Below are positions 1-60,409 of a DNA stretch of 64,000 nucleotides, piece after piece (position 1 is the stretch's first letter; each line of letters begins with the position of its first letter). A model generated the notes under the pieces. That model made no database searches. It had not been told where the DNA came from and saw nothing but the letters and a program-made list of their open reading frames with translations. The stretch covers positions 1-64,000 of IMG/VR virus record IMGVR_UViG_3300042691_042003. One strand, written 5' to 3'. Both the position numbers and the translations under genes were made by a program.

Positions 1-9614
<9,614 letters not shown>

Positions 9615-47854: not shown

Positions 47855-47968
47855 TATACTTCAACTGGAAGAACTTGAGTAACTGTATTCTTCTTTACCT
47901 GAAATCCTTGTAATGGTTATATGACTTCTTGGATGAGTGAGTTTCATTTTTTTAAAATATTTTTCAAG

Positions 47969-47976
47969 GATAAATA
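47969..47976 (+). promoter_or_regulatory. GATAAATA putative late promoter
   Basis: Motif 4 nt before ATG 47981, at the head of the first tagged-protein cluster. Confidence 0.5.
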
Positions 47977-47980
47977 TTAT

Positions 47981-48331
47981 ATGAAAACATTTTACTCATA
48001 TTCAGATCTGCTGAACGAAGCTTCGGGACCTGAAAGTCGAATTGAAGATTTAGCGAAAGATCCTAAAACACATAAGGCTTTAGGAACTTCTGATGAAGGG
48101 AAGCTTAAACATGCATTTATGGTTCTTTTTAAAAGAGGATACGGAGCTGCACAAACTAATTGGGCAGCCGTTAATCCAAATATTAAGAAGTTAGGAAAAC
48201 CTGCAGCATATAATGCATGGGGTTATGCAAGGCTAAATGCATTCATTAAGAAAACAAAAGGATATGAAACAACTGATTCTGATGTAGCTGATTGGCTAAA
48301 CGGAAAAGGTGAGAAACCAGAACCAAATTAA
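47981..48331 (+). CDS. Putative internal head protein (capsid-targeting-like N-terminus)
   Basis: Real start is probably 47981 (MKTFYSYSDLLNE); the body (KRGYGAA...AWGYARLNAFI) resembles a small viral domain (DUF5824-like, recalled, not searched). Confidence 0.55.
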   Translation: MKTFYSYSDLLNEASGPESRIEDLAKDPKTHKALGTSDEGKLKHAFMVLFKRGYGAAQTNWAAVNPNIKKLGKPAAYNAWGYARLNAFIKKTKGYETTDSDVADWLNGKGEKPEPN

Positions 48332-48336
48332 TACAT

Positions 48337-48963
48337 ATGAAAAATATACCTTCATTTGAAGAATTCATTACCGAAAGCTTTCTTTTCGAAGAAGACAAAC
48401 CTAGAGTAGGTCATACCGTTAAGAGAAAAAAATATGCTGATGATCCACCAGATATCGGTCTCTATTCTAAAGGAGGCAGAGATGCTATTAAAGGTACTGG
48501 ATATGCTAATAAAGAAAAAGCCGAATTTACTATTAAGAAGCTTGATGAGTTGATGAAGAAAGGAGAGAGAGTTTGGGCTATGTCTATTGCGACTACAATG
48601 GAATCTAGAGCTAAAAAGCATAAGCATCAAACTCCTGAAATGAGAGAAGCTATGAAGATTTTTAGAGAGTGGATCGATAAGAATAAACTTAAAGAATCCG
48701 AAGATCATAAAGTAGAAGAAGGCGATGGTCTTTTTAGTCCTGGAGATAAAAATGCAGTTAAAGGAACTGGATATGGATCTAAAGAAAAAGCTGAAAAGAC
48801 TATTCAAATTATTGATAAGTTGAAGAAATCTGATCATAGACATGCTATGTCTATTGCTACAACTATGATGAATAGAGCAGAACACTCAGCTAATCAAACC
48901 GAGGGAATGAAAGCAGCTATTCCTATTTTTAAAAAATGGATCGAAGATAATAAAAAAACGTAA
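48337..48963 (+). CDS. Putative internal head protein with a tandem duplicated ~80-aa domain
   Basis: N-terminal MKNIPSFEEFITE; two copies of KGTGY.(N/S)KEKAE.TI...AMSIATTM..RA. Confidence 0.6.
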   Translation: MKNIPSFEEFITESFLFEEDKPRVGHTVKRKKYADDPPDIGLYSKGGRDAIKGTGYANKEKAEFTIKKLDELMKKGERVWAMSIATTMESRAKKHKHQTPEMREAMKIFREWIDKNKLKESEDHKVEEGDGLFSPGDKNAVKGTGYGSKEKAEKTIQIIDKLKKSDHRHAMSIATTMMNRAEHSANQTEGMKAAIPIFKKWIEDNKKT

Positions 48964-48967
48964 AAAA

Positions 48968-49339
48968 ATGAAAAACCTACTTACATTCAAAGAATTCTTA
49001 AATGAAAACATAAACGAAATGGTCAGATCTTTCTCTCTTTCAAAAGACGAAAAAGAATTTAAAGGAGATTTTAAAAACATAAAGAATTCTGCTTCTGATT
49101 TTCTGGATTTCCTTAAAAAAGAAAGATACACATGGTCGGATACGTCTTTTATGTACTTTCCTAATTTTGTTTGGGCCGGTGGTAAGCAGGTTTTTGGTCC
49201 TAGTATAGGAATCTTAATAGGTAGTGATACTATTGCAATTCGACCAATTGGCACCGATAAAGTTATTAAAGTTGGAGATGGAATTCTTCAGCGATTGATA
49301 CAAAATGGTCAGATAGAATCTTATGCAATGAAATTCTAA
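48968..49339 (+). CDS. Putative internal head protein
   Basis: N-terminal MKNLLTFKEFLNE. Confidence 0.55.
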   Translation: MKNLLTFKEFLNENINEMVRSFSLSKDEKEFKGDFKNIKNSASDFLDFLKKERYTWSDTSFMYFPNFVWAGGKQVFGPSIGILIGSDTIAIRPIGTDKVIKVGDGILQRLIQNGQIESYAMKF

Positions 49340-49351
49340 TGTAAAATCTTA

Positions 49352-49684
49352 ATGAGCACATTTCTAAAATATGATGAATTTCTTTTTGAGAAGGCTTATT
49401 CGAAAGAAGTAAAGTCTTCTCATTTAAAAGAAATGAATTATGATAGTGATACAAAAATTTTAGAAATAGAATTTCTAAATGGATCTAGATATCAATATAA
49501 AAATGTTCCTGAAAAAGTTTATAAAGAACTTGCTGAAGAACAAAATATACTGCGTAAATTAGGAAGAGGGATTATGAGAGGAGCAAAAAAGCTATTTGGA
49601 AGTGAAATAGGTGAAGATACATTTGGAGGGAGATTCTGGGAATTAATAAGAAAAGGAGATTACGAATATAAAAAAATAAATTAA
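49352..49684 (+). CDS. KTSC-domain protein with capsid-targeting-like N-terminus
   Basis: VKSSHLKEMNYDSDTKILEIEFLNGSRYQYKNVPEKVYKEL is the KTSC signature; N-terminal MSTFLKYDEFLFE. Confidence 0.8.
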   Translation: MSTFLKYDEFLFEKAYSKEVKSSHLKEMNYDSDTKILEIEFLNGSRYQYKNVPEKVYKELAEEQNILRKLGRGIMRGAKKLFGSEIGEDTFGGRFWELIRKGDYEYKKIN

Positions 49685-49686
49685 GC

Positions 49687-49779
49687 ATGAAATTTTTAAG
49701 AGCTATATTGAAAGTTTTTAAAAAGAGAGCGATAGAAGTTAAGAAAAATTTTGATAACGACATTCATCTTTTTATATAA
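49687..49779 (+). CDS. Unannotated 30-aa cationic amphipathic peptide
   Basis: MKFLRAILKVFKKRAIEVKKNFDNDIHLFI begins 2 nt after the upstream stop and fills the gap up to the next promoter. Confidence 0.4.
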   Translation: MKFLRAILKVFKKRAIEVKKNFDNDIHLFI

Positions 49780-49845
49780 ACTTTTTGTAATCAAGTACAT
49801 ATAATAATTAAATCAAGTAAATAAACGTAAATAAAGTAAAGTAGT
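49778..49845 (+). promoter_or_regulatory. Promoter and repetitive A-rich leader of the SSB gene
   Basis: CATATAAT at 49798; AATCAAGTA at 49789 and 49811; GTAAATAAA at 49817 and 49827. Confidence 0.5.
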
Positions 49846-50793
49846 ATGGAAAATTTCGACATTTTTAATCTAAGTATTGACAATTTTAAGTCAGAAGAAA
49901 AACAAGTTCAAAAAAGCAACGAATACAAAACAGATCCTAAATCTTCAAAAGATTCGATCTATCGTTCAATCGTTCGTTTCATCCCAAACATTAAAGATCC
50001 TAAAAAATCTATCATTAAGAAATTTTCTTATTGGTTAGAAGGAAACGATGGTGAAGGATTCTATGTAGATTGTCCTTCTTCAATCAACGAAAAAAGTATT
50101 ATCCAAGATACATTTTGGAAACTTTTTAAATCTGAATCAGCATTTGATAAAAAACAATCAGAACGAATCAAACGTAAAGAATATTATTATTCTTATGTTG
50201 AAATCGTTAAAGATCCACAAAATCCTGAACTCGAAGGAACTATTCAAATCTTTCGATATCCTAAAGCAGTTAAAAAACTTATCGATTCTCAACTACAACC
50301 TGAAGCAACTGAAATTGAAATGGGTGCAGAACCCGTAAATGTTTTCGATTTCTTTGAAGGGAAAGATTTTTCAATTAAAGTAACTTTGAAAGGCGGATAT
50401 TGGAATTATGACGAATGTAAATTCGCTTCTTCTAAATCTCCAATTACTGTTAAAGGTTCTAAGATGGAAAACAATGCAGAATGCCGTAAACAAATTCTTG
50501 CAATGTACGAAGGTCTTCAACCGCTTGAAGGTTATGAATTTAAACCTTGGAACGATGATCAACGTGAACGAGTTTTCAAATTTATTTCTGATCTAACAGG
50601 AAGTAATCCAGGAAATGCTTATGCAAATACAACTAATTATTCTAAGCCTTCTCCTCCTCCGGTAGAATCACCTAAAGCAGAAAAAACTGAAACCGATAAA
50701 AGAATCGATGCATTTGAAAATGCAAGTAAAGATTCTGCAAAAGCAGCCGATAACGACATCGAAGATTGGTTGAAAGAATTTGATATTAAGTAA
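49846..50793 (+). CDS. Single-stranded DNA-binding protein, T4 gp32-like
   Basis: IVRFIP, YYSYVEIVKDPQNPELEGTIQIFRY, FDFFEGKDFSIKV, WNYDECKF, and an acidic C-terminal tail. Confidence 0.9.
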   Translation: MENFDIFNLSIDNFKSEEKQVQKSNEYKTDPKSSKDSIYRSIVRFIPNIKDPKKSIIKKFSYWLEGNDGEGFYVDCPSSINEKSIIQDTFWKLFKSESAFDKKQSERIKRKEYYYSYVEIVKDPQNPELEGTIQIFRYPKAVKKLIDSQLQPEATEIEMGAEPVNVFDFFEGKDFSIKVTLKGGYWNYDECKFASSKSPITVKGSKMENNAECRKQILAMYEGLQPLEGYEFKPWNDDQRERVFKFISDLTGSNPGNAYANTTNYSKPSPPPVESPKAEKTETDKRIDAFENASKDSAKAADNDIEDWLKEFDIK

Positions 50794-50807
50794 TAAATCT
50801 TTTTTGT

Positions 50808-50844
50808 AAAGGGCATCCATTGAATAAGTGGGTGCCTTTTATTT
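50808..50844 (+). terminator. Intrinsic terminator-like hairpin after the SSB gene
   Basis: AAAGGGCATCCA pairs with TGGGTGCCTTTT (two G-U pairs), followed by a T-rich run. Confidence 0.65.
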
Positions 50845-50851
50845 CATTACT

Positions 50852-51916
50852 ATGGAATTAAATACAACAAAAAAGGAAGAAATTATTTCTAGGGTTCAAC
50901 GAGTCCTCTTAGAAAGATTTGAAGGACCTAAGAAAGAAATCAGAATTTATCTAGATCGTCTGAATTTTGCTTGTCCTTATTGTGGTGATTCTAATGATCC
51001 TTATAAGAAACGAGCAAATCTGTATTGGAAAAATCTAATTTTTCATTGTTACAATGGTGGATGTACAAAAAGACATACAACCCTTGTAGATTTTCTAAAG
51101 GATAATAATCAATCGATAAGTTCAAAAGAAGATTTAGTTTTCTATCTTGATTATATTCGACAAAATCAAGTAGTAGTTCCGACAAAAGACTACATGGAAT
51201 TAGGTGTATTTGAAATAATGAACAAATATGCCATTCCTCTCGAAGATATTAAGAAAAAATTCAATCTTCTTCATCCTTCTGAAAATTTAAGGATCGAAAG
51301 ATACTTAAAAGGAAGATTTTTACATACTAGATTAGATTTTTTTCTTTATGATCCTAAAGAAGAACAACTTTATATTTTTAATCTAAGTCCTGATTTGAAA
51401 AGAACTTATGGATGGCAAATTCGAAATTTTAAACCGAATCGAACAAAATACATAAGTTATAATATTGAAAAAGCAAATCATTTGATTTACGATAAAAGGA
51501 TTGAAGCTTCCGATGATGAATTAATTAAAATGAATACATTAAGTATCTATTTTAATATTGCTTTAGTAGATTTTACAAAAACAGTAACAATATTCGAAGG
51601 ACCTATAGATTCTTTTCTTCATAAGAATTCAATTGCTCTATCAGGTGTTGACAAGCCAATTGAAATGTTCGATGAAATTACTACAGTCAGGTACTTCTTG
51701 GATAATGATCCTCCAGGAAGAAAAAAGATGGAATTCCTTCTAAAAAAGCGTAAATCGGTTTTTATGTGGAATAAAATTCTTAGAGACTTTAAAATTAGAG
51801 AAAACGTAAAAGATTATAACGATTTAATTAAGTACTGTTGGACTTACAAAAATAATGCAATACGAGAATTGGAAAAATATTTCACGGCAAATCCATTGGA
51901 TATCCGTTCTGTCTGA
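50852..51916 (+). CDS. DNA primase, T4 gp61-like
   Basis: Zn finger CPYCGDS...FHCYNGGC; TOPRIM IFEGPIDS and YFLDND. Start is ATG 50852, since the GTG at 50828 lies inside the hairpin. Confidence 0.9.
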   Translation: MELNTTKKEEIISRVQRVLLERFEGPKKEIRIYLDRLNFACPYCGDSNDPYKKRANLYWKNLIFHCYNGGCTKRHTTLVDFLKDNNQSISSKEDLVFYLDYIRQNQVVVPTKDYMELGVFEIMNKYAIPLEDIKKKFNLLHPSENLRIERYLKGRFLHTRLDFFLYDPKEEQLYIFNLSPDLKRTYGWQIRNFKPNRTKYISYNIEKANHLIYDKRIEASDDELIKMNTLSIYFNIALVDFTKTVTIFEGPIDSFLHKNSIALSGVDKPIEMFDEITTVRYFLDNDPPGRKKMEFLLKKRKSVFMWNKILRDFKIRENVKDYNDLIKYCWTYKNNAIRELEKYFTANPLDIRSV

Positions 51917-51917
51917 T

Positions 51918-52115
51918 ATGAATGAACAAGAAGAAAAATTTGAAGAAAGATTTCTAAAAGAAAATGATTATAGGTTAATCGTTGATTTTAACGAAGTGAA
52001 TCTAGAATTTTCAGGAAAACAAATGGAAATAGGAGACATAAAATATAAAAAGAAAAAAGTTTTAAAACAATCTACGATTGATTTAAAAAAGAAAAAAGAT
52101 TCAGATTTATTCTAA
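51918..52115 (+). CDS. Hypothetical protein (65 aa)
   Basis: ATG directly after the primase stop; coupled to the next gene (TAATG). Confidence 0.55.
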   Translation: MNEQEEKFEERFLKENDYRLIVDFNEVNLEFSGKQMEIGDIKYKKKKVLKQSTIDLKKKKDSDLF

Positions 52116-52561
52116 TGAGTGAAGAAGAGAAAAAAGTATCAGAATTAGAAGAAGCTCTAGAAAAAGAGAGAATAGATTATTCTGCTAAGATAGGTGATCT
52201 TTTTCCAATGATTAATAAGATCGATAGAATATCCGAAGCACAAGTTTTAATGCTTTCTTATCGACATATGTTAGTAGAAAAACTTGCTAAATATCGAGCT
52301 GCTAATTACAAAAAGAAATCTAACGATCAGAATTATCGTAAGATGAGATATGAATATTATAAAACTCAACATGATGTTCGTTTAGATTATCGTGAAATAA
52401 ACGAATTTATTAGTTCTGATATGTCTCTTCGAATTAGACAAACTGATCTTCTTGAAAGTCAAATGACATTCTATAGTCAATGTATTGATACTCTCGATAG
52501 AATGGGATTTGCAATCAAAAACCGTCTTCAAATTGAAGAAATAAATAAACATTTAATGTAA
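52115..52561 (+). CDS. uvsY: Recombination mediator, UvsY-like
   Basis: Helical 148-aa protein directly before UvsW, with YEYYK...EINEFISSD. Confidence 0.55.
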   Translation: MSEEEKKVSELEEALEKERIDYSAKIGDLFPMINKIDRISEAQVLMLSYRHMLVEKLAKYRAANYKKKSNDQNYRKMRYEYYKTQHDVRLDYREINEFISSDMSLRIRQTDLLESQMTFYSQCIDTLDRMGFAIKNRLQIEEINKHLM

Positions 52562-54078
52562 TGCAATGGGAACTCACACATAATGATAAGATTCTTACTC
52601 TGAATTCTGCTTCAGAAATGGAGTTAGAGCAGCTAAAAATAACATTTACTAAAGAAGCTGCTAATGCTCGTTGGGATCCTAGAGTAAAGAAAGGTTGGTG
52701 GGATGGAAAAATATCTTATCTAAAAGCAAATCGTTATTTACCTGCAGGTTTATGGCATGAGCTAGTTGATACTGCAAAACAATATAATTTTGAAATTTCT
52801 ATTGATGGAATTGAAAGAAAATTTGATAGAGAAATAGATAAAGATGAATTTGTTTCTTGGGTAGAAGAAAAATGGGCTAATTCTTCTAGAAAACCTAGAG
52901 ATTATCAAATAGAAACAGCTTTTCAAATTATTAAGTATAAAAGTTGTTTAGCAGAACTTGCTACTTCTGCAGGTAAAACTCTTATTATATTTATGGTTTT
53001 TTCTTATCTTTTAGAAAGATTAAAAGCTAAGAAAATTCTTATGATTGTTCCAACCGTAGATCTTGTCGTGCAATCAACCGAAGATTTCTATGAATATAAT
53101 ACTGAATCGGTAAATTTAAAGCTACAGATTCAACAGATATTCTCAGGATCAGTAATTAGAGATGGAGCTAATATAGTAATCGGAACTTATCAATCCCTTG
53201 TTAAGAAAGGAAAAGAATATTTTGATTCTTTTGATACTGTTGTAGTTGATGAAACTCATAAAGCAAAATCGACTTCTATTAAATCTATTCTTGAAAAATG
53301 TGAAGAAGCTGATAGAAAATTCGGTCTTTCAGGTACAATTCCAAAACCTGGAACATTAGATAGGCTAACTCTTATGGCTTACACAGGACCTATTATTACT
53401 TCTATTCGAGCAGATTTTCTTATTGAAAAAGGACATATCACACCTTGTGAAGTTCTTGCAATAGAAATGAATTATGCTCCTCAAGATGTTAGAGAAGGAT
53501 TTAGAACTCTTCATCAAAGATCCGAAGAAGACAGAAAGAAGCTACTTAATCTAGAACAAAATTATGCAATTCAATCGGAAGAAAGGCTAGAATTTATTAC
53601 AGATATGATTTTAAAAAATCATAAAAATTCACTCGTTCTTTTTTATCGAATTGATTATGGCAATAAGTTGTATAATAAACTTCGCCAAAAGACAAATCGA
53701 AGGATATTTTATATAGACGGAAGTACCGATAAAGATCTTAGAGAACATCAAAAAGAAAATCTCGAAGAAGGAGAACAAAAGATAATGATTGCTTCTTATG
53801 GTACATTTTCAACTGGAATTAACGTAACTAATATTCATACAATTTATCTTACAGAATCTTTCAAATCTGAAGTTATTATCCGTCAATCTATTGGTAGAGG
53901 TTTAAGAAAACATTCGGATAAAAAGAAACTTGTGATCGTAGATTTTATCGATGATTATCGAATAGGTCGTTACAATAATTATCTTTTTAAGCACGGACTT
54001 AGTCGACAAGAAATTTATACAGAACAGAATTTCCCCTTTCAGATTAAGTCTATAGACCTAGGAAGGATATATAACTAA
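52561..54078 (+). CDS. uvsW: SF2 DNA helicase, UvsW-like
   Basis: PRDYQ, ATSAGKT, VVVDETH, GLSGT, YGTFSTGIN, RQSIGRGLR. Confidence 0.92.
   Translation: MQWELTHNDKILTLNSASEMELEQLKITFTKEAANARWDPRVKKGWWDGKISYLKANRYLPAGLWHELVDTAKQYNFEISIDGIERKFDREIDKDEFVSWVEEKWANSSRKPRDYQIETAFQIIKYKSCLAELATSAGKTLIIFMVFSYLLERLKAKKILMIVPTVDLVVQSTEDFYEYNTESVNLKLQIQQIFSGSVIRDGANIVIGTYQSLVKKGKEYFDSFDTVVVDETHKAKSTSIKSILEKCEEADRKFGLSGTIPKPGTLDRLTLMAYTGPIITSIRADFLIEKGHITPCEVLAIEMNYAPQDVREGFRTLHQRSEEDRKKLLNLEQNYAIQSEERLEFITDMILKNHKNSLVLFYRIDYGNKLYNKLRQKTNRRIFYIDGSTDKDLREHQKENLEEGEQKIMIASYGTFSTGINVTNIHTIYLTESFKSEVIIRQSIGRGLRKHSDKKKLVIVDFIDDYRIGRYNNYLFKHGLSRQEIYTEQNFPFQIKSIDLGRIYN
54066..54073 (+). promoter_or_regulatory. 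GATATATA putative late promoter
   Basis: Recurrent motif at the end of uvsW, 20 nt before the next ATG. Confidence 0.5.
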
Positions 54079-54093
54079 AAATATTCTTTTAGA

Positions 54094-54321
54094 ATGGCCT
54101 TAATGAAGTTTAGAGCTTTTAATAAAATGATAAAAGAGATTAAAGCTCGAAAAGAATATGAGTCAAAAGCATCTACTTACAAAAAAATCTATTTAGAGAA
54201 GTTAAGCTCTTACGGAGTTAAGGATGCTTCTGAGCTATCGGATGAACAATTATCAGAATTCCTCGAAGGAATGAAATCTTATAGAAATGGCGGAAATATT
54301 AACCCTCAGAGAAGTCTTTAG
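54094..54321 (+). CDS. Small hypothetical protein (possible prohead core component)
   Basis: 75 aa, charged and helical; follows a late-type motif. Confidence 0.5.
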   Translation: MALMKFRAFNKMIKEIKARKEYESKASTYKKIYLEKLSSYGVKDASELSDEQLSEFLEGMKSYRNGGNINPQRSL

Positions 54322-55510
54322 GAAAGAAGGAATCGAATTTGTAGAAAAGCTATTTAGTAGCTATGTGATAATTAGCGAAAAGCTAAATGCAACTAGATTC
54401 GCATTCGAAAAAACCGAAGACGGAATTACTTTTTATAAAAAAGATGGAAAAATAAATTCGATTGAGAGAACTCTTAATCAAATTTTTGAATCACCAATAG
54501 CTTATATAGAAAATCTACCTAAATCCGTTATGGATAAAATCCCTAATGGATACAGATATGGTTTTAGATATTTTCATTCTTCTTCCCCTATAAATATCGA
54601 ATATGATAGGATTCCTCTTAATGGTTTAATCCTTACGGATATGATGAAAATATCTGATAGTCGTATTGTTGATGATCCTTCTATTGTTAATTCTATTGCT
54701 AAACTTTTAAAAGTAGAAAAACCTCCAATTATTTGGTATGGTAAGCTAGATGATCAGCAAAAAGAAAAGCTAAAAGATTATTTAAGAACTTCTGAAGATT
54801 CTCTTAAGAATAAATTTAAAACTGATTCTTTTACCAAATATATTATTTCTATTCTAAATCCTGGAATGAAAAAGACAGCTTTAAATAATGATGTAGAAAA
54901 GCCGATAGATTCAGTTGTTTTTAAGTTTATAGGAGAAAATGGAAAAGAAACTTTTTATGCTAAGACAGTAGATCCTATTATTCAACAGTTAAGTAAAACT
55001 AACGAAAAGGAAAGAGAGCCACAAGATATGTATGGTATAATTCTTTCTGACGTTATGGAATTTATGAAAATAAATGGATTAAGAAAATATTCAATTCCTT
55101 CAGGGGATTATGAAGAAAAATATCTTCACTTAATTTGTAAAATTTTCAACGATTATATTAAGAAAAGAGGGACTAAATATGAAGGTGTAGAAATTGATAA
55201 GAATTCTTTTAGATCTATTCCTCAATTCGATCTTAATTCAGGGTTTATTCCCGATTTACAAACAAGAGATCTTCTTTTTCAATCTAGAATAAATAAAAAC
55301 ATCTTTAAGATTATTCTTTCTTCTTTTTATCGACCGAAAAGAAAACCTACAGGATTTATTACACAAATGATGATTTCTGATCTTTCTGAATTAGTAGATA
55401 AAATAAAAGAAAAGATCGAAAATGTTGATCTTAAGACAGAAAGCAATGTGATGACTTTCGAACAATATTTATCAAATAAAAGAGAAAAATCTTTTAAGAT
55501 TAAAGATTGA
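54287..55510 (+). CDS. Degenerate RNA ligase 2-like (nucleotidyltransferase-fold) protein
   Basis: Motif I-like ISEKLNAT, YGFRY, PPIIWYGKL, motif IV-like IDSVVFKF and motif V-like AKTVDP, in the expected order. Confidence 0.5.
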   Translation: MAEILTLREVFRKEGIEFVEKLFSSYVIISEKLNATRFAFEKTEDGITFYKKDGKINSIERTLNQIFESPIAYIENLPKSVMDKIPNGYRYGFRYFHSSSPINIEYDRIPLNGLILTDMMKISDSRIVDDPSIVNSIAKLLKVEKPPIIWYGKLDDQQKEKLKDYLRTSEDSLKNKFKTDSFTKYIISILNPGMKKTALNNDVEKPIDSVVFKFIGENGKETFYAKTVDPIIQQLSKTNEKEREPQDMYGIILSDVMEFMKINGLRKYSIPSGDYEEKYLHLICKIFNDYIKKRGTKYEGVEIDKNSFRSIPQFDLNSGFIPDLQTRDLLFQSRINKNIFKIILSSFYRPKRKPTGFITQMMISDLSELVDKIKEKIENVDLKTESNVMTFEQYLSNKREKSFKIKD

Positions 55511-55516
55511 TAAATA
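55509..55516 (+). promoter_or_regulatory. GATAAATA putative late promoter
   Basis: Recurrent motif upstream of the second tagged-protein cluster. Confidence 0.5.
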
Positions 55517-55533
55517 TAAAAAAATAAAACGAA

Positions 55534-56028
55534 ATGTTTACTAAAGAATTTTTAGATTCTGTTTTAGAAAGTAGAGAATCTATTTCTATTTTAATTGAGG
55601 GAGAAATCCATACAATTTCTTCTACCGAATTTTTATCCGAATCGGATATTGAAAATATTGAAGAAATTTACGAAAGTGAAGAAGAAATTCTTGAAAGAGT
55701 TCAAATTAAAAGAAAATATGGAGAATATTCTTCTTATCAGGTAAATCGAGGTGCTCCTATTCGTAATAGAATTATTGAATTTGTAGGAAAAAGATTTGTT
55801 ACTGAAGACGAATTAAAGAATTTTCTAATTCGTTTAGAAGAGGAAAAAGGTTCTGCTATCGATCAAAGAAAATGGTTTTCTAGAAATCAAAAATACTTTG
55901 AATCTTTTCAAAATAGAGGTCAAAAAGTTTGGACACTTTCTAAATTTGGAAAAAGAGTTTTAGAATTTGTAGTTAAATCTGCACAACAAAAACAAATAAA
56001 TGAATCTGTAGGTTTATTTAAGTTTTAA
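55534..56028 (+). CDS. Hypothetical protein, possibly processed by the prohead protease
   Basis: Acidic N-terminal propeptide-like segment rich in (I/L/V)xE sites, followed by a basic helical domain. Confidence 0.5.
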   Translation: MFTKEFLDSVLESRESISILIEGEIHTISSTEFLSESDIENIEEIYESEEEILERVQIKRKYGEYSSYQVNRGAPIRNRIIEFVGKRFVTEDELKNFLIRLEEEKGSAIDQRKWFSRNQKYFESFQNRGQKVWTLSKFGKRVLEFVVKSAQQKQINESVGLFKF

Positions 56029-56029
56029 T

Positions 56030-56575
56030 ATGAAGAATATACCTGAATTTGAAGATTTTATTCGTGAAAATGCTTCTGAAGCATTTAAATATCATATGGA
56101 AAGAGGTTTAGGTATTACTGAATCAATTTTCCGTATTGGATCTGAAGCATATAATAAGCTTTTTGAAGAAACTAAAGAATGGTGGGATAAAGGAAATGTT
56201 ATTCTTAATGATAAAGAGGCTTGGATGGCAAAAAATCTTCAAATAGGTAAAAAAGCTAAATTTAAGACTGCTGATGGAAAAATGATAGATGTTGAATTAG
56301 ACACACCAACTAGAGGAGGTGAACGTAAATTTAAAGTTTATCATGATAGTGGCAAAAAAGATGAAGATGGAAATATCCTTGCTATGGAAATAGGTTGGGG
56401 ACAACCAGGAGTTTCTATTAAAAATGAAGATCCAGGAGCTGCAGCAAGTTATTGGAGTAGACAACAATGCGATTTGAAGAAAAGTATGGATCCTAAAACT
56501 GCTAAATTCTGGGCATGTTATGCTCCTTCTCTTTTCACTAAGCAAATCGGTTTAACTTCGGATAATCCTTGGTAA
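56030..56575 (+). CDS. Putative internal head protein
   Basis: N-terminal MKNIPEFEDFIRE; C-terminal basic domain with two Cys (RQQC...KFWAC), resembling a small conserved T4-like phage protein. Confidence 0.6.
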   Translation: MKNIPEFEDFIRENASEAFKYHMERGLGITESIFRIGSEAYNKLFEETKEWWDKGNVILNDKEAWMAKNLQIGKKAKFKTADGKMIDVELDTPTRGGERKFKVYHDSGKKDEDGNILAMEIGWGQPGVSIKNEDPGAAASYWSRQQCDLKKSMDPKTAKFWACYAPSLFTKQIGLTSDNPW

Positions 56576-56591
56576 TAAATTAAACTATAAA

Positions 56592-56855
56592 ATGAAAAAT
56601 CATATTCTTTCTTTTGAGGAATTCTTAAACGAATCCAATAAAATTTCACATTTCGGAATCGAATCTGCCGCAGTTCAATTAGCTCATTCTATGCCTAATC
56701 ATACAAAACCTGATGATAAAGGTAATTTTAGTGATGAACAAATAGAAAATGCAATCAAGAAATATAGTCCTATTCTTAAGCAACATTTAAGTTCTAGAAC
56801 AGGAATGAAAGAAGAAATTATTTCTAGAATTAAAAGCATTGTTAATGAATCTTGA
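56592..56855 (+). CDS. Putative internal head protein
   Basis: N-terminal MKNHILSFEEFLNE. Confidence 0.55.
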   Translation: MKNHILSFEEFLNESNKISHFGIESAAVQLAHSMPNHTKPDDKGNFSDEQIENAIKKYSPILKQHLSSRTGMKEEIISRIKSIVNES

Positions 56856-57118
56856 TGTATCCCTTCGAAGAAAGTAAACAATCAGAAAATACTTATATCA
56901 GAATCTTCTCTAAAGATACTGATGAGTATGATTTAAAATGGCATTGGGACGAAGAAGATAGAATAGTTCAATCTCTAGAAAAAACAGATTGGGAATTTCA
57001 ATTTGATAACGAATTACCGATCAGCTTCGATAAAGAAATTTTTATTCCTAAAGGAGTTATACATCGAATAATAAAAGGAACTGGAGATCTTAAATTAAAA
57101 GTAATTAAATATGATTAA
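56855..57118 (+). CDS. Small cupin-like protein
   Basis: LKWHWDEEDR...WEFQFDNELP...IFIPKGVIHRIIKG has cupin His motifs; start is ATG 56855. Confidence 0.6.
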   Translation: MYPFEESKQSENTYIRIFSKDTDEYDLKWHWDEEDRIVQSLEKTDWEFQFDNELPISFDKEIFIPKGVIHRIIKGTGDLKLKVIKYD

Positions 57119-57458
57119 ACGAATCCCTACATTTTCTGAATTTTTAAATGAAGCAGAAATTCCTTTTTCAATTGAAGGTCTTAGATTAGATAAGCTAAAA
57201 TGGGATGAAGATAATGATTTATCTAAAACTCTTAGAGATAAATTAGGTATAGATAATTCTAGAGTTTTTGTTGCAAGAGATGATTCTAGAGATAGAGAGT
57301 ATAAATTTGAATCTTGGGAAAATTCTTTTGGATATATAATCAGACTTAAAGAAGATAAAAAAATTATTTACGATAAAGTCTATCCTTCAGATTCTAAAAT
57401 TTACTACGATCAAGATTGCGAACTTATTTTAGGATCAAAAATAAAATTAAAGAAATGA
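57111..57458 (+). CDS. Putative internal head protein
   Basis: N-terminal MIKRIPTFSEFLNE. Confidence 0.55.
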   Translation: MIKRIPTFSEFLNEAEIPFSIEGLRLDKLKWDEDNDLSKTLRDKLGIDNSRVFVARDDSRDREYKFESWENSFGYIIRLKEDKKIIYDKVYPSDSKIYYDQDCELILGSKIKLKK

Positions 57459-57688
57459 AAAATTTTGAATCTTTTGATGAGTTCTTAAATGAAGCTACAA
57501 AAAGAACTCCTGATCAAGTAAATAAAGATTCCGAAAAAAGGATAAAAGAACAAATAACTCGTTATTCAGAATTGATGAAATCTAATCCAGAAAGAGCAAA
57601 TTTTTATAAAGCTCAATTAGATTTAGCTCATGCAAGAATGACAGTCCTTGCTTTGAAAAGAAAGGTTGATGCATTAAGATCAAAATAA
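57455..57688 (+). CDS. Putative internal head protein (helical)
   Basis: Real start is ATG 57455 (ATGA overlap): MKNFESFDEFLNE. Confidence 0.6.
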   Translation: MKNFESFDEFLNEATKRTPDQVNKDSEKRIKEQITRYSELMKSNPERANFYKAQLDLAHARMTVLALKRKVDALRSK

Positions 57689-57696
57689 TTTTAAAA

Positions 57697-58053
57697 ATGC
57701 CAGCAGTTTCTCAAGCACAACAACGTTTAATGGGTCAAGCTTATGCTTTGAAAAAAGGTGATCTTAAATCAGATAACCTTAATCCTAAATATGCAGATCA
57801 AATAAAAGATCTTGCAAGTAGTATGACTCTTAAACAGCTTAAAGATTATGCTGAAACTTCTAATGAAGATCTTCCAAAAAAGATTATAAAAGAAAATTCT
57901 CCACTTGCAACAGCTAGTTCTGTTAATGGTATGGGCCCTATTAGTTTACCCGTAGGAGATAAACCTGGCAGTGGAGATATTCCATTTCTTCTTCCTGCTA
58001 AAAAGAAGAAAAACTTTAAAAAGTTCTCTGAACTTATTAAAGCTAAACAATAA
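57697..58053 (+). CDS. DUF3008-like small protein
   Basis: N-terminal MPAVSQAQQRLMGQAYALKKG...TLKQLKDYAET resembles the DUF3008 pattern (recalled, not searched). Confidence 0.5.
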   Translation: MPAVSQAQQRLMGQAYALKKGDLKSDNLNPKYADQIKDLASSMTLKQLKDYAETSNEDLPKKIIKENSPLATASSVNGMGPISLPVGDKPGSGDIPFLLPAKKKKNFKKFSELIKAKQ

Positions 58054-58805: not shown

Positions 58806-59024
58806 ATGGAAAATATGAAATTAAATGTGGATTTGGCAAAAAATTCCACAGCAGTTAAATGTCAAAACGAAGAATGTGAAAGTGATCTTTTTAGAGAAGT
58901 AGCTTATCTTCGTAAAATTTCAAAATTATTTACAGGAGCACCTAACGATACTTATGTTCCTATTCCTGTGTTCCAATGTTCGGTTTGCGGGCATATAAAT
59001 AAAGAATTTATCCCAAAAATTTAA
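58806..59024 (+). CDS. Small zinc-ribbon protein
   Basis: CQNEEC...FQCSVCGH. Confidence 0.7.
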   Translation: MENMKLNVDLAKNSTAVKCQNEECESDLFREVAYLRKISKLFTGAPNDTYVPIPVFQCSVCGHINKEFIPKI

Positions 59025-60409
59025 TGATACTTGACGTAGAAGTTAACGATAACGATTTAGTTATTTCCTACTTCGATAAAGAAGGGAAGTCTAAAATCAA
59101 AAGATTTGACATACCCAGTCCTACTAATTGGACTATCTGTTCAGAACATGATCCTAAAAAAGATCCTAATTTTAAGAATTGGGATGGTAAAAGTGTAAAG
59201 AAAATTCAAGAAAAAAGATTTAATAAATGGTCGATTTATGAATTTATTCATACTTTACCAAAAGAAGATCGAGATGAATTATCTGCACTTAATTTTCCCA
59301 AAGTTCAATCGATAGATATCGAAACTGAAATTATCGATTCATTTCCAGTTCCTGAAGTTGCTCGTGAAAGAATTACAACTATTGCAATTGCAACAGAATC
59401 TAATTCTACTATCGTTTTAGGATGGAAACCAATCGATAAAAAACAAGAAAAAGAAATTTTTGATAAACATCAAGAATATCTAAAAGGATTTGGTGATTGG
59501 TCATTCAAATATATTTGTTTTGAAGACGAATATAATATGATGTATACATTCATCAATAAATTCCTACCTAATTTTTCTCTTGTCATCGGTTGGAATTTCA
59601 TGGGTTTTGACTGGAAATACATCTTTAATCGTTGTAAAAGATTAGGAATTGATGTTAGAATGGCATCTCCTTCTCATAAACTTCAAGGAAACGATAATAT
59701 TCCTGTTCATGTAGGAATGGTCGATTATCTAGATATTTATCGTCGATGGGATAGAACTGTTGCAATTAAAGAAAGTAATTCTCTAGATTTCGTTTCTAAT
59801 GCAGTCTTAGGTGTAACAAAATTAAAATATAATGGAACACTTAAAGAATTGTATGACCAAGACTATGATAAATATATTTTATATAACGCAATCGATGCTT
59901 CGCTTGTATGTTTAATACATAAGAAATTAAAAACTTTAAATTCAGTCTTATCTGTGTCTTCTTTATGTAATCTTTCAATCTACAAAGCTTCATCAGCGGT
60001 TAATCTGACTGAAGCTCTTCTCTGGAAAGGTTATTACGAAAGAAATCTTGTTATTGCAGACAGAAAGGTAGAAACTCCTCGAGGTGCATATGAAGGTGCC
60101 TATGTTAAAGAACCTGAGCCAGGTATGTTCCGAGCTGTAACTTGCTTCGATTATGCCTCTCTATATCCTTCAATTATGCGACAGTTTAATGTTTCTCCTG
60201 AATCTTTTATTGTAAAAACTCAAGATTCTAAAAAACTAGATAAACATAAAGAAGATCCAAATTATATAGTTTCGGTTAATGGTGCTATTTATGATAATAA
60301 AGAAGTATCCGTCTTAAAGGAAATTCTTACGAATTTATATTCAGAACGTAAAAGAAATAAGAACAGACACCTAGAGATCGAAAGAAAACTAGCAAAAATA
60401 AAAAAATAA
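59024..60409 (+). CDS. Family B DNA polymerase, N-terminal subunit (exonuclease + motif A; gp43A-like)
   Basis: ExoI DIETE, ExoII GWNFMGFD, ExoIII YNAID and motif A FDYASLYPSIM; it stops in the fingers before KxxxNSxYG and YxDTDS. Confidence 0.9.
   Translation: MILDVEVNDNDLVISYFDKEGKSKIKRFDIPSPTNWTICSEHDPKKDPNFKNWDGKSVKKIQEKRFNKWSIYEFIHTLPKEDRDELSALNFPKVQSIDIETEIIDSFPVPEVARERITTIAIATESNSTIVLGWKPIDKKQEKEIFDKHQEYLKGFGDWSFKYICFEDEYNMMYTFINKFLPNFSLVIGWNFMGFDWKYIFNRCKRLGIDVRMASPSHKLQGNDNIPVHVGMVDYLDIYRRWDRTVAIKESNSLDFVSNAVLGVTKLKYNGTLKELYDQDYDKYILYNAIDASLVCLIHKKLKTLNSVLSVSSLCNLSIYKASSAVNLTEALLWKGYYERNLVIADRKVETPRGAYEGAYVKEPEPGMFRAVTCFDYASLYPSIMRQFNVSPESFIVKTQDSKKLDKHKEDPNYIVSVNGAIYDNKEVSVLKEILTNLYSERKRNKNRHLEIERKLAKIKK

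Follow-up and report, generated by a model that had tools for sequence, protein, structure and literature searches.

The DNA analysed here, called the window, is a stretch of 64,000 nucleotides corresponding to bases 1-64000 of the 246,081-bp JGI/IMG-VR contig 3300042691 / IMGVR_UViG_3300042691_042003. Between positions 47981 and 57688 it carries eight open reading frames (ORFs) that open with the same short peptide, referred to below as the tag or leader, which resembles the capsid-targeting sequence (CTS) of phage T4. Tail, baseplate, and fibre genes fill positions 87-47258 of the window and are followed by a first cluster of tagged genes. After this cluster come gp32, a UvsY-like gene, and UvsW, and then a second tagged cluster, which is followed by DUF3008, dUTPase, half of a family-B DNA polymerase, and ribonucleotide reductase (RNR). 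Every gene in the tagged region lies on the plus strand. The eight tagged genes are as follows (pI, isoelectric point; bits, score in the position-specific scoring matrix, or PSSM, introduced below).

47981..48331, plus strand: tagged gene 1, 116 residues; leader MKTFYSYSDLLNE at 47981-48019; 11.7 bits
48337..48963, plus strand: tagged gene 2, 208 residues; leader MKNIPSFEEFITE at 48337-48375; pI 9.5; 32.6 bits
48968..49339, plus strand: tagged gene 3, 123 residues; leader MKNLLTFKEFLNE at 48968-49006; 30.7 bits
49352..49684, plus strand: tagged gene 4, 110 residues; leader MSTFLKYDEFLFE at 49352-49390; 14.0 bits
56030..56575, plus strand: tagged gene 5, 181 residues; leader MKNIPEFEDFIRE at 56030-56068; 23.7 bits
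56592..56855, plus strand: tagged gene 6, 87 residues; 14-residue leader MKNHILSFEEFLNE at 56592-56633
57111..57458, plus strand: tagged gene 7, 115 residues; 14-residue leader MIKRIPTFSEFLNE at 57111-57152; mature pI 5.6
57455..57688, plus strand: tagged gene 8, 77 residues; leader MKNFESFDEFLNE at 57455-57493; mature pI 10.2; 28.8 bits

Coordinates and translations were verified for all eight ORFs, each of which opens with M-K-x-[ILV]-x-[TS]-[FY]-x-[DE]-[FL]-[LI]-x-E. The first start, 47981, is an internal ATG of the mechanically called ORF 47921-48331; orthologues in relatives start at the tag (L008:203, L021:9648). The regular expression M[KSI].{1,6}[FY].[DEKS][FL][LIF].E, applied to all six frames of the window, matches these eight starts only. 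When the residues of each window protein were shuffled, N-terminal matches fell to 0.08 per window (maximum 2 in 2000 shuffles), compared with the 7-8 observed. If the Met anchor is dropped, the seven-residue core gives 14 matches in 22,101 residues of plus-strand ORFs, of which 8 lie no more than 10 residues from the N-terminal Met, and the minus strand of the window gives zero core matches. A PSSM trained on 333 tags, all from other contigs, cleanly splits the N-termini of this contig: 15 reach 11.7 bits or more, the one after them drops to 2.3, and nothing on the minus strand exceeds -13.2. The motif is far above chance, and a chance origin is rejected. The original prediction, which had reported a shared N-terminal motif in these eight ORFs, is therefore confirmed at exact coordinates.

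The tags end, in gene order, in LNE, ITE, LNE, LFE, IRE, LNE, LNE, and LNE, so that all eight have a cleavage-type [LI]-x-E end. Synonymous codons differ at each conserved position (TTT/TTC, GAA/GAG, AAT/AAC; at least six codons at P3), which indicates that the constraint lies on the peptide and not on the DNA, and a DNA-level element was rejected as the cause of tag conservation. Once the tags are removed, the eight proteins show no significant mutual similarity (best E = 0.016, 8-sequence database). Paralogy was considered and rejected, and the view that the mature parts are otherwise unrelated stands.

The mature parts are neutral to basic in seven of the eight proteins (pI 7.9-10.2), tagged gene 7 alone encoding an acidic one. 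That of tagged gene 1 has 103 residues, a pI of 9.5, and no known domain. In the 208-residue product of tagged gene 2, an indel-rich linker follows the tag and precedes two repeated three-helix units, an internal duplication; the family alignment shows tag, hypervariable linker, and conserved domain, in that order. The AlphaFold2 model of this protein has a helix at residues 7-16 and further helices at 59-116 and 149-205, with low overall confidence (pTM 0.39), and together with the alignment it bears out the duplicated helical domain proposed for this ORF. Tagged gene 3 has a second INE site directly after the leader. The KTSC domain proposed for tagged gene 4 was recovered at residues 21-64 (PF13619, E = 8e-16) and is the sole Pfam domain among the eight. 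For the mature domain of tagged gene 5, leaderless homologues are encoded by Tenacibaculum phage pT24 and by Flavobacterium phage immuto; pelagiphage HTVC008M and others have partial ones. Searches of Pfam, PHROGs, PDB sequences, and the ESM Atlas gave no function for a cargo domain other than KTSC and a weak DUF5754 lead, and the database names of the cargo proteins are all 'hypothetical protein'.

The tag is not confined to the window. Two further parts of the contig were read, namely the head-module locus L165 (contig 71957-93798) and L147, the final 6.9 kb of the contig, so that the census covers 92 of 246 kb (37% of the genome). The following genes were found there.

L165:1697, 4905, 5822, and 6664: tagged genes on the head-module side, the last three directly upstream of the portal gene
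L165:20021, 20284, 20663, and 20916: tagged genes after the clamp loader
L165:4431, 15800 (RimK-type ATP-grasp enzyme), and 17278: tag-like leaders
L147:802, 1208, and 1599: tagged genes

Counting 14- and 10-residue versions, 19-21 genes in 92 kb are tagged, or about one gene in six. None of the Pfam-identified replication or nucleotide-metabolism genes in the 92 kb is tagged, and neither is any tail or baseplate gene. The original prediction had described two tagged clusters; both exist in the window, but the tag is genome-wide and, as described next, clade-wide.

A scan of IMG/VR with a back-translated tag pattern returned at least 120 loci. Among the matches listed, 11 short loci hold a gp21-like protease beside a gp23/24-like capsid gene. 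In the close relative L070, six to seven tagged ORFs lie directly upstream of the portal, protease/scaffold, and major capsid protein (MCP) genes, and its protease, used as query, recovered L165, the head module of the window contig itself. In 65 head-module loci of relatives (844 kb), the regular expression gives 197 matches on the gene strand and 0 on the opposite strand, and 178 of the 197 are N-terminal; many relatives also have one tagged gene between the protease and the MCP. Tags are plentiful in genomes with a protease that shares at least about 58% identity with the L070 protease (the protease of the window contig shares 70%). More distant relatives retain a single tagged family, the orthologue of L165:1697, and of all tagged families the one with the widest conservation lies closest to the head genes.

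Among the loci listed there are 458 unique tags, 76% of which have exactly 13 residues. Their consensus is M-K-[NHK]-[ILV]-[KPLQ]-[TLS]-F-[ED]-[EDQ]-F-[LIV]-N-E, followed by S, A, K, N, or G, with F or Y at P7, F at P4 (89%), L, I, or V at P3, and E at P1. Grouped by similarity, the mature parts of the same loci (median length 150 residues) form about 199 families, which bears out the proposal that the tag is portable over diverse domains. The variable linker and the leaderless homologues of the 56030 protein fit a tag that would move as a portable module. This lineage has spread the leader over dozens of genes per genome.

Two enzymes occur among the proteins with such leaders. A RimK-type ATP-grasp ligase with a tag-like leader is encoded just downstream of the MCP, and its counterparts in relatives are joined to Zn_protease and DUF5661 domains; a MATCAP-family peptidase of another contig is also tagged (L165:15800-17275; L184:17177-18892; L116:5424-6581). 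Their presence suggests that peptides might be both ligated and cleaved within the head.

A T4-type head module lies about 18 kb downstream of the window on the same contig. Its central genes are listed below.

L165:8342: portal (gp20), Portal_T4, E = 8e-71
L165:10001-11845 (contig 81957-83801): protease-scaffold fusion of 614 residues, Peptidase_S77, PF03420, E = 3.6e-12
L165:11939: MCP (gp23), Gp23, E = 8e-36

The original prediction called for a gp21-like protease elsewhere in the genome, and the Peptidase_S77 domain on this contig answers that call: its His and Ser motifs align to those of T4 gp21 (GELNHP/GELDHP and VSSRG/ISSRAAG), and it matches S77 better than S80. The prohead protease, a serine protease of the gp21 family, is joined here to a presumed scaffold, a helical domain in which a 14-residue unit is repeated about fourteen times and [LI]-x-E sites abound; T4 has separate genes for the two. 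The repeat region spans residues ~238-433 of the fusion, and each repeat bears Y-x-x-[YH]-I-A-E; the autocorrelation of identity rises to 0.27 at a lag of 14 residues and 0.29 at 28, compared with ~0.04 elsewhere. L165 contains three internal matches to the tag core, all of them in the scaffold, and in the scaffolds of relatives 2-8 such motifs recur every 14 residues, alongside a conserved F-[LF]-N-F-L-x-E. The spacing of aromatic, aromatic, aliphatic, and Glu is identical in the scaffold repeat and the tag. Since the scaffold repeats carry the tag core, the tag seems to be a single scaffold repeat that has been set, together with its protease site, at the N-terminus of a passenger protein. 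Leaders of the [LI]-x-E type also open the MCP and the protease of the contig (MYLINE and YLLVLE), and the first 43 residues of the MCP hold three [LI]-x-E sites (LINE, I[IL]E, and LYE) that are invariant across the clade.

Leaders of this kind are present in T4. Its ipII and ipIII genes open with MKTYQEFIAE and ipI with MKTFKEF...ITE, and the regular expression derived from the clade, applied to 26 kb of T4, matched ipII and ipIII and nothing else. Openings of gp22, gp24, and gp21 are MLKEQLIAE, MAKINELLRE, and MNEPQLLIE, respectively, and the gp23 site is FLTE|A. The T4 CTS of about 10 residues is cut once and exits the head, and the internal proteins (IPs), or a foreign protein fused to the CTS, remain (PMC8442874). 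In IPIII, residues 4 and 7 control targeting and residues 8 and 10 control processing (PMC9026906). These four residues correspond to P7, P4, P3, and P1 of the tag, which are its best-conserved positions, and the description of the tag as T4-CTS-like holds in this respect as well. Other T-even phages have CTS-like leaders on assorted basic proteins (PMC9026906, PMC3012670).

It is likely, then, that the 13-residue motif is a greatly expanded version of a T4-type leader for capsid targeting and cleavage. As the leader resembles both the T4 CTS and the scaffold repeat of the phage itself, the tagged proteins are probably loaded into the phage head. The process may be pictured as follows. The leader would form a short helix and co-assemble with the scaffold core while the prohead is being built, and the protein that bears it would thereby be carried inside. 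The protease would then cut after the terminal Glu, according to the [LI]-x-E rule, and free the mature protein from the scaffold, which would itself be cut up and lost; judging from the scaffold repeat, the tags may be released by the same cuts that dismantle the scaffold. The mature proteins, mostly small and basic, would stay with the DNA and probably be delivered into the next host cell. On a wider reading, the lineage has made T4 capsid targeting into a general code for cargo loading, in which one N-terminal scaffold repeat would direct dozens of proteins of each genome to the head and so to the next host, with hundreds of families across the clade, including the RimK-type ATP-grasp ligase and the MATCAP-type peptidase. 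We put this wider reading forward tentatively, at slightly less than an even chance. The further step that the injected proteins act as effectors of host takeover or anti-defence is so far a conjecture of the original prediction, and nearly all the cargo domains are of no recognisable function.

Several observations weigh against this interpretation. The regular expression fixed P7, P4, P3, and P1, so the match to T4 is partly built into the search. A share of one gene in six, when T4 has a handful of CTS proteins, implies an unusually complex packaged proteome. The clusters of the window are placed among replication genes, and the GATA-type box at 47969, described below, stands only 12 nucleotides from the 47981 ATG (others 21-40), which makes it a doubtful promoter for this gene. 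The nearest sequenced phages beyond the clade, LR756500.1, Lak-A2, PTm1, and pT24, have the same head genes and no tags near them (annotation of pT24 and PTm1 is sparse), from which it follows that the head machinery does not require the tag. Finally, the T4 gp23 cleavage site aligns to no [LI]-x-E in the MCP of the contig; the nearest, LYE, is about 10 residues upstream.

Other explanations account for parts of the evidence. One keeps the origin and processing of the leader and changes the fate of the proteins, which would be accessory prohead-core or scaffold proteins, like T4 gp67 and gp68, that are cut up and expelled at maturation. Several tagged genes lie beside the scaffold in the head module, where the most widely conserved tagged family adjoins the head genes; some of the products are acidic, K/E-rich, and of low complexity (L165:1697, 4905), and most of the mature parts hold further [LI]-x-E sites. 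However, two of the eight in the window lack any such site, and most have compact conserved domains (KTSC, the helical repeats, and the 56030 domain of unrelated phages). Their charge, neutral to basic in seven of the eight, is that of the T4 IPs, and some 199 unrelated families are hard to square with a structural role. We judge this alternative unlikely.

The leader could also be a docking peptide for another partner shared in the infected cell, such as a chaperone, the sliding clamp, a protease, or a degradation adaptor, its likeness to the T4 CTS being convergent. Short amphipathic helices with aromatics are common docking motifs, and both the setting of the window tags and the untagged nearest outgroup phages agree with such a role, but it leaves unexplained why the tags end in [LI]-x-E and copy the scaffold repeat, why tagged genes are concentrated beside the portal, protease, and MCP, and why the tag matches the experimentally mapped residues of the T4 CTS; we therefore consider it quite improbable. 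Conservation at the level of nucleic acid, with the peptide as a by-product, is more improbable still. Here the element would act in translation initiation or in the mRNA, or as a short homology for cassette shuffling. The tags are AT-rich and start with ATG AAA AAT, an opening that suits hosts in which initiation does not depend on a Shine-Dalgarno sequence, and T-even IP loci are known as recombination hot spots. Against this, synonymous codons vary freely at all conserved positions, with P3 codons drawn from three amino acids, and structural and replication genes with high expression lack the motif. The reading of the tag as a T4-type leader that would carry proteins into the head is the one retained below.

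Promoter-like elements and untagged genes accompany the tagged clusters. Those of the window are listed here together with the box copies upstream of start codons.

47969..47977, plus strand: GATAAATAT box, 12 nucleotides upstream of the 47981 ATG
55509..55517, plus strand: GATAAATAT box, 25 nucleotides upstream of ORF 55534
55534..56028, plus strand: first gene of cluster 2, 164 residues, MFTKEFLDSVLES; untagged or weakly tag-like, failing both the regular expression and the PSSM; carries the box
56852..57118, plus strand: untagged gene in cluster 2, 88 residues
Window 11988, 18834, 20046, 54066, and 55509; L165:541, 1668, 6638, 9974, 13628, and 19997; L147:777 and 5395: the 13 box copies upstream of start codons

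The original prediction had a GATAAATA box at the head of both clusters. Boxes are indeed present at 47969 and 55509, but the second heads the untagged or weakly tag-like ORF 55534 and the first lies too near its ATG to resemble the others. Nor is the box a feature of these clusters in particular: it is one variant of a general element, GATA[T/A]ATA[T/A], that also precedes the sheath-like, baseplate, and protease/scaffold genes. This element occurs in 21 copies on the plus strand and 5 on the minus strand of the 92 kb, and 13 of the copies lie 21-40 nucleotides upstream of start codons. The starts so preceded include those of the sheath-like gene (12013), the baseplate genes (18874 and 20070), the protease/scaffold gene, L165:1697, 6664, and 20021, L147:802, and window ORF 55534, and several tagged clusters are preceded by it. 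The 55509 box differs by one base from that of the protease/scaffold gene (GATATATAT...AAAAAAT). A separate element, CATATAAT, is found 12-48 nucleotides upstream of gp32, dUTPase, the clamp loader, and others. GATA[T/A]ATA[T/A] may be a late-type promoter, and the two elements may represent late and early/middle promoter classes, respectively. For comparison, the T4-type late promoter, TATAAATA, is gp55-dependent, and an A/T box about 10 nucleotides upstream of late starts and a gp55-like sigma factor were considered. A 118-residue ORF in the head module (L165:4075-4431), kept in L070, has a weak Sigma70_r2 match (E = 4e-4, below the Pfam cut-off) and may encode such a gp55-like late sigma factor. 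A scan for sigma-70 promoters and terminators gave no excess over shuffled sequence.

In pT24 and immuto the homologue of the 56852 protein comes after that of the 56030 protein; this adjacency makes the two a conserved gene pair. Tagged gene 56592 sits as an extra insert between the paired genes 56030-56575 and 56852-57118. Elsewhere, the N-terminal domain of a TnsA-like endonuclease (PF08722, E = 1.6e-17) is encoded at L165:7078-7557, two genes upstream of the portal, and a similar ORF is at the same position in LR756500.1. The family-B DNA polymerase is seemingly split into two genes, a 461-residue exonuclease/N-terminal part (window 59024-60409) and a 398-residue polymerase part (contig ~65.2-66.4 kb), with RNR genes and small ORFs between them. 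Giant collagen-like proteins with Gly-X-Y repeats are encoded at window 1-9614 and L147:3839-6925, and a 3175-residue ORF is truncated by the start of the window. The first 34 bases of the window recur at the end of the contig, within the collagen-like giant gene. The contig is thus terminally redundant and broken within a collagen-like repeat gene, and the genome is probably complete and circularly permuted.

The source is an uncultured freshwater jumbo phage and a distant relative of T4. By baseplate and capsid proteins the nearest GenBank record is the 462-kb metagenomic phage LR756500.1 (43-55% identity); Lak megaphages and jumbo phages of Tenacibaculum, Sphingomonas, and Chryseobacterium are also near. 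Megablast of the tagged region against GenBank phages gave no match, the phage collection searched holds no isolate of the clade, and no clade member was among the matches listed in a tblastn search with T4 gp21. Sequence nearly identical to window 47900-57700 is present in many DNA runs from several studies (freshwater, aquatic, plankton, aquaculture, and 'fungus' metagenomes), which indicates that the phage is widespread in fresh water. In one RNA run, 7% of the words sampled from the same interval were present.

In the literature searched, a short portable CTS is described only for T4 and close relatives, where it marks a few injected anti-restriction or host-modifying proteins and has been used to engineer T4 as a protein-delivery particle. 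If the tag is indeed a leader of this kind, the principle of a scaffold mimic ending in [LI]-x-E would be old and general in the T4 superfamily, and on the wider reading given above, sequence alone would be enough to tell which proteins uncultured phages package and inject. Such a listing of candidate packaged or injected proteins of metagenomic phages would be a candidate set for anti-defence and takeover functions. For experiments on cargo loading, the phage would add a second natural tag that comes with its own scaffold and protease.

Among known systems, encapsulin cargo peptides are likewise short, terminal, and sufficient to load varied cargo into an HK97-fold shell; as a rule these are C-terminal peptides that attach to the shell protein itself and stay uncleaved. 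We know of no homology between them and the tag. In the phiKZ-like giants (phiKZ, 201phi2-1, and SPN3US), many head-internal proteins are cut after Glu by a diverged gp21 homologue, and their N-terminal propeptides are thought to direct them to the prohead (PMC5694885, PMC9026906). These propeptides are mostly longer than 100 residues, end in S/A/G-x-E, and have no common short tag, whereas the tag described here is a uniform 13-mer ending in [LIV]-N-E. A phiKZ-type inner-body or ejection propeptide was also rejected as a candidate, given the length and ending of the tags and an S77 score above that for S80. The propeptides of the T4 head core (gp22, gp21, gp24, gp67, and gp68) are short leaders that end in [LI]-x-E, and the tag resembles the repeated cleavage motif of the scaffold itself. 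They belong, however, to structural proteins with fixed roles, whereas the tag is found on hundreds of unrelated accessory domains.

The closest parallel is the T4 CTS, which is removed by gp21 from IPI, IPII, IPIII, and Alt. In both phages a leader of 10-20 residues stands at the extreme N-terminus of unrelated, mostly basic small proteins and has in common a core of T/S, aromatic, x, acidic, F, I/L, x, and E. The [LI]-x-E site is cut after Glu in T4, and cleavage is predicted there in the tags of the contig. Both have a gp21-family protease with a gp20/gp23 head module, and in both the cargo genes are dispersed outside this module and the cargo set is hypervariable among relatives. The tag differs from the T4 CTS in having 13 residues instead of 10, the three extra following Met-Lys, and in having Asn instead of Ala at P2. 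Unlike in T4, the protease is fused to the scaffold, and 19-21 tagged genes are present in 37% of the genome as against 3-5 in T4. Host and lineage differ as well, the tag belonging here to a freshwater jumbo phage with LR756500.1 and the Lak phages as its allies. The principle is known from T4; the novelty lies in its scale and in its occurrence in an uncultured lineage far removed from T4.

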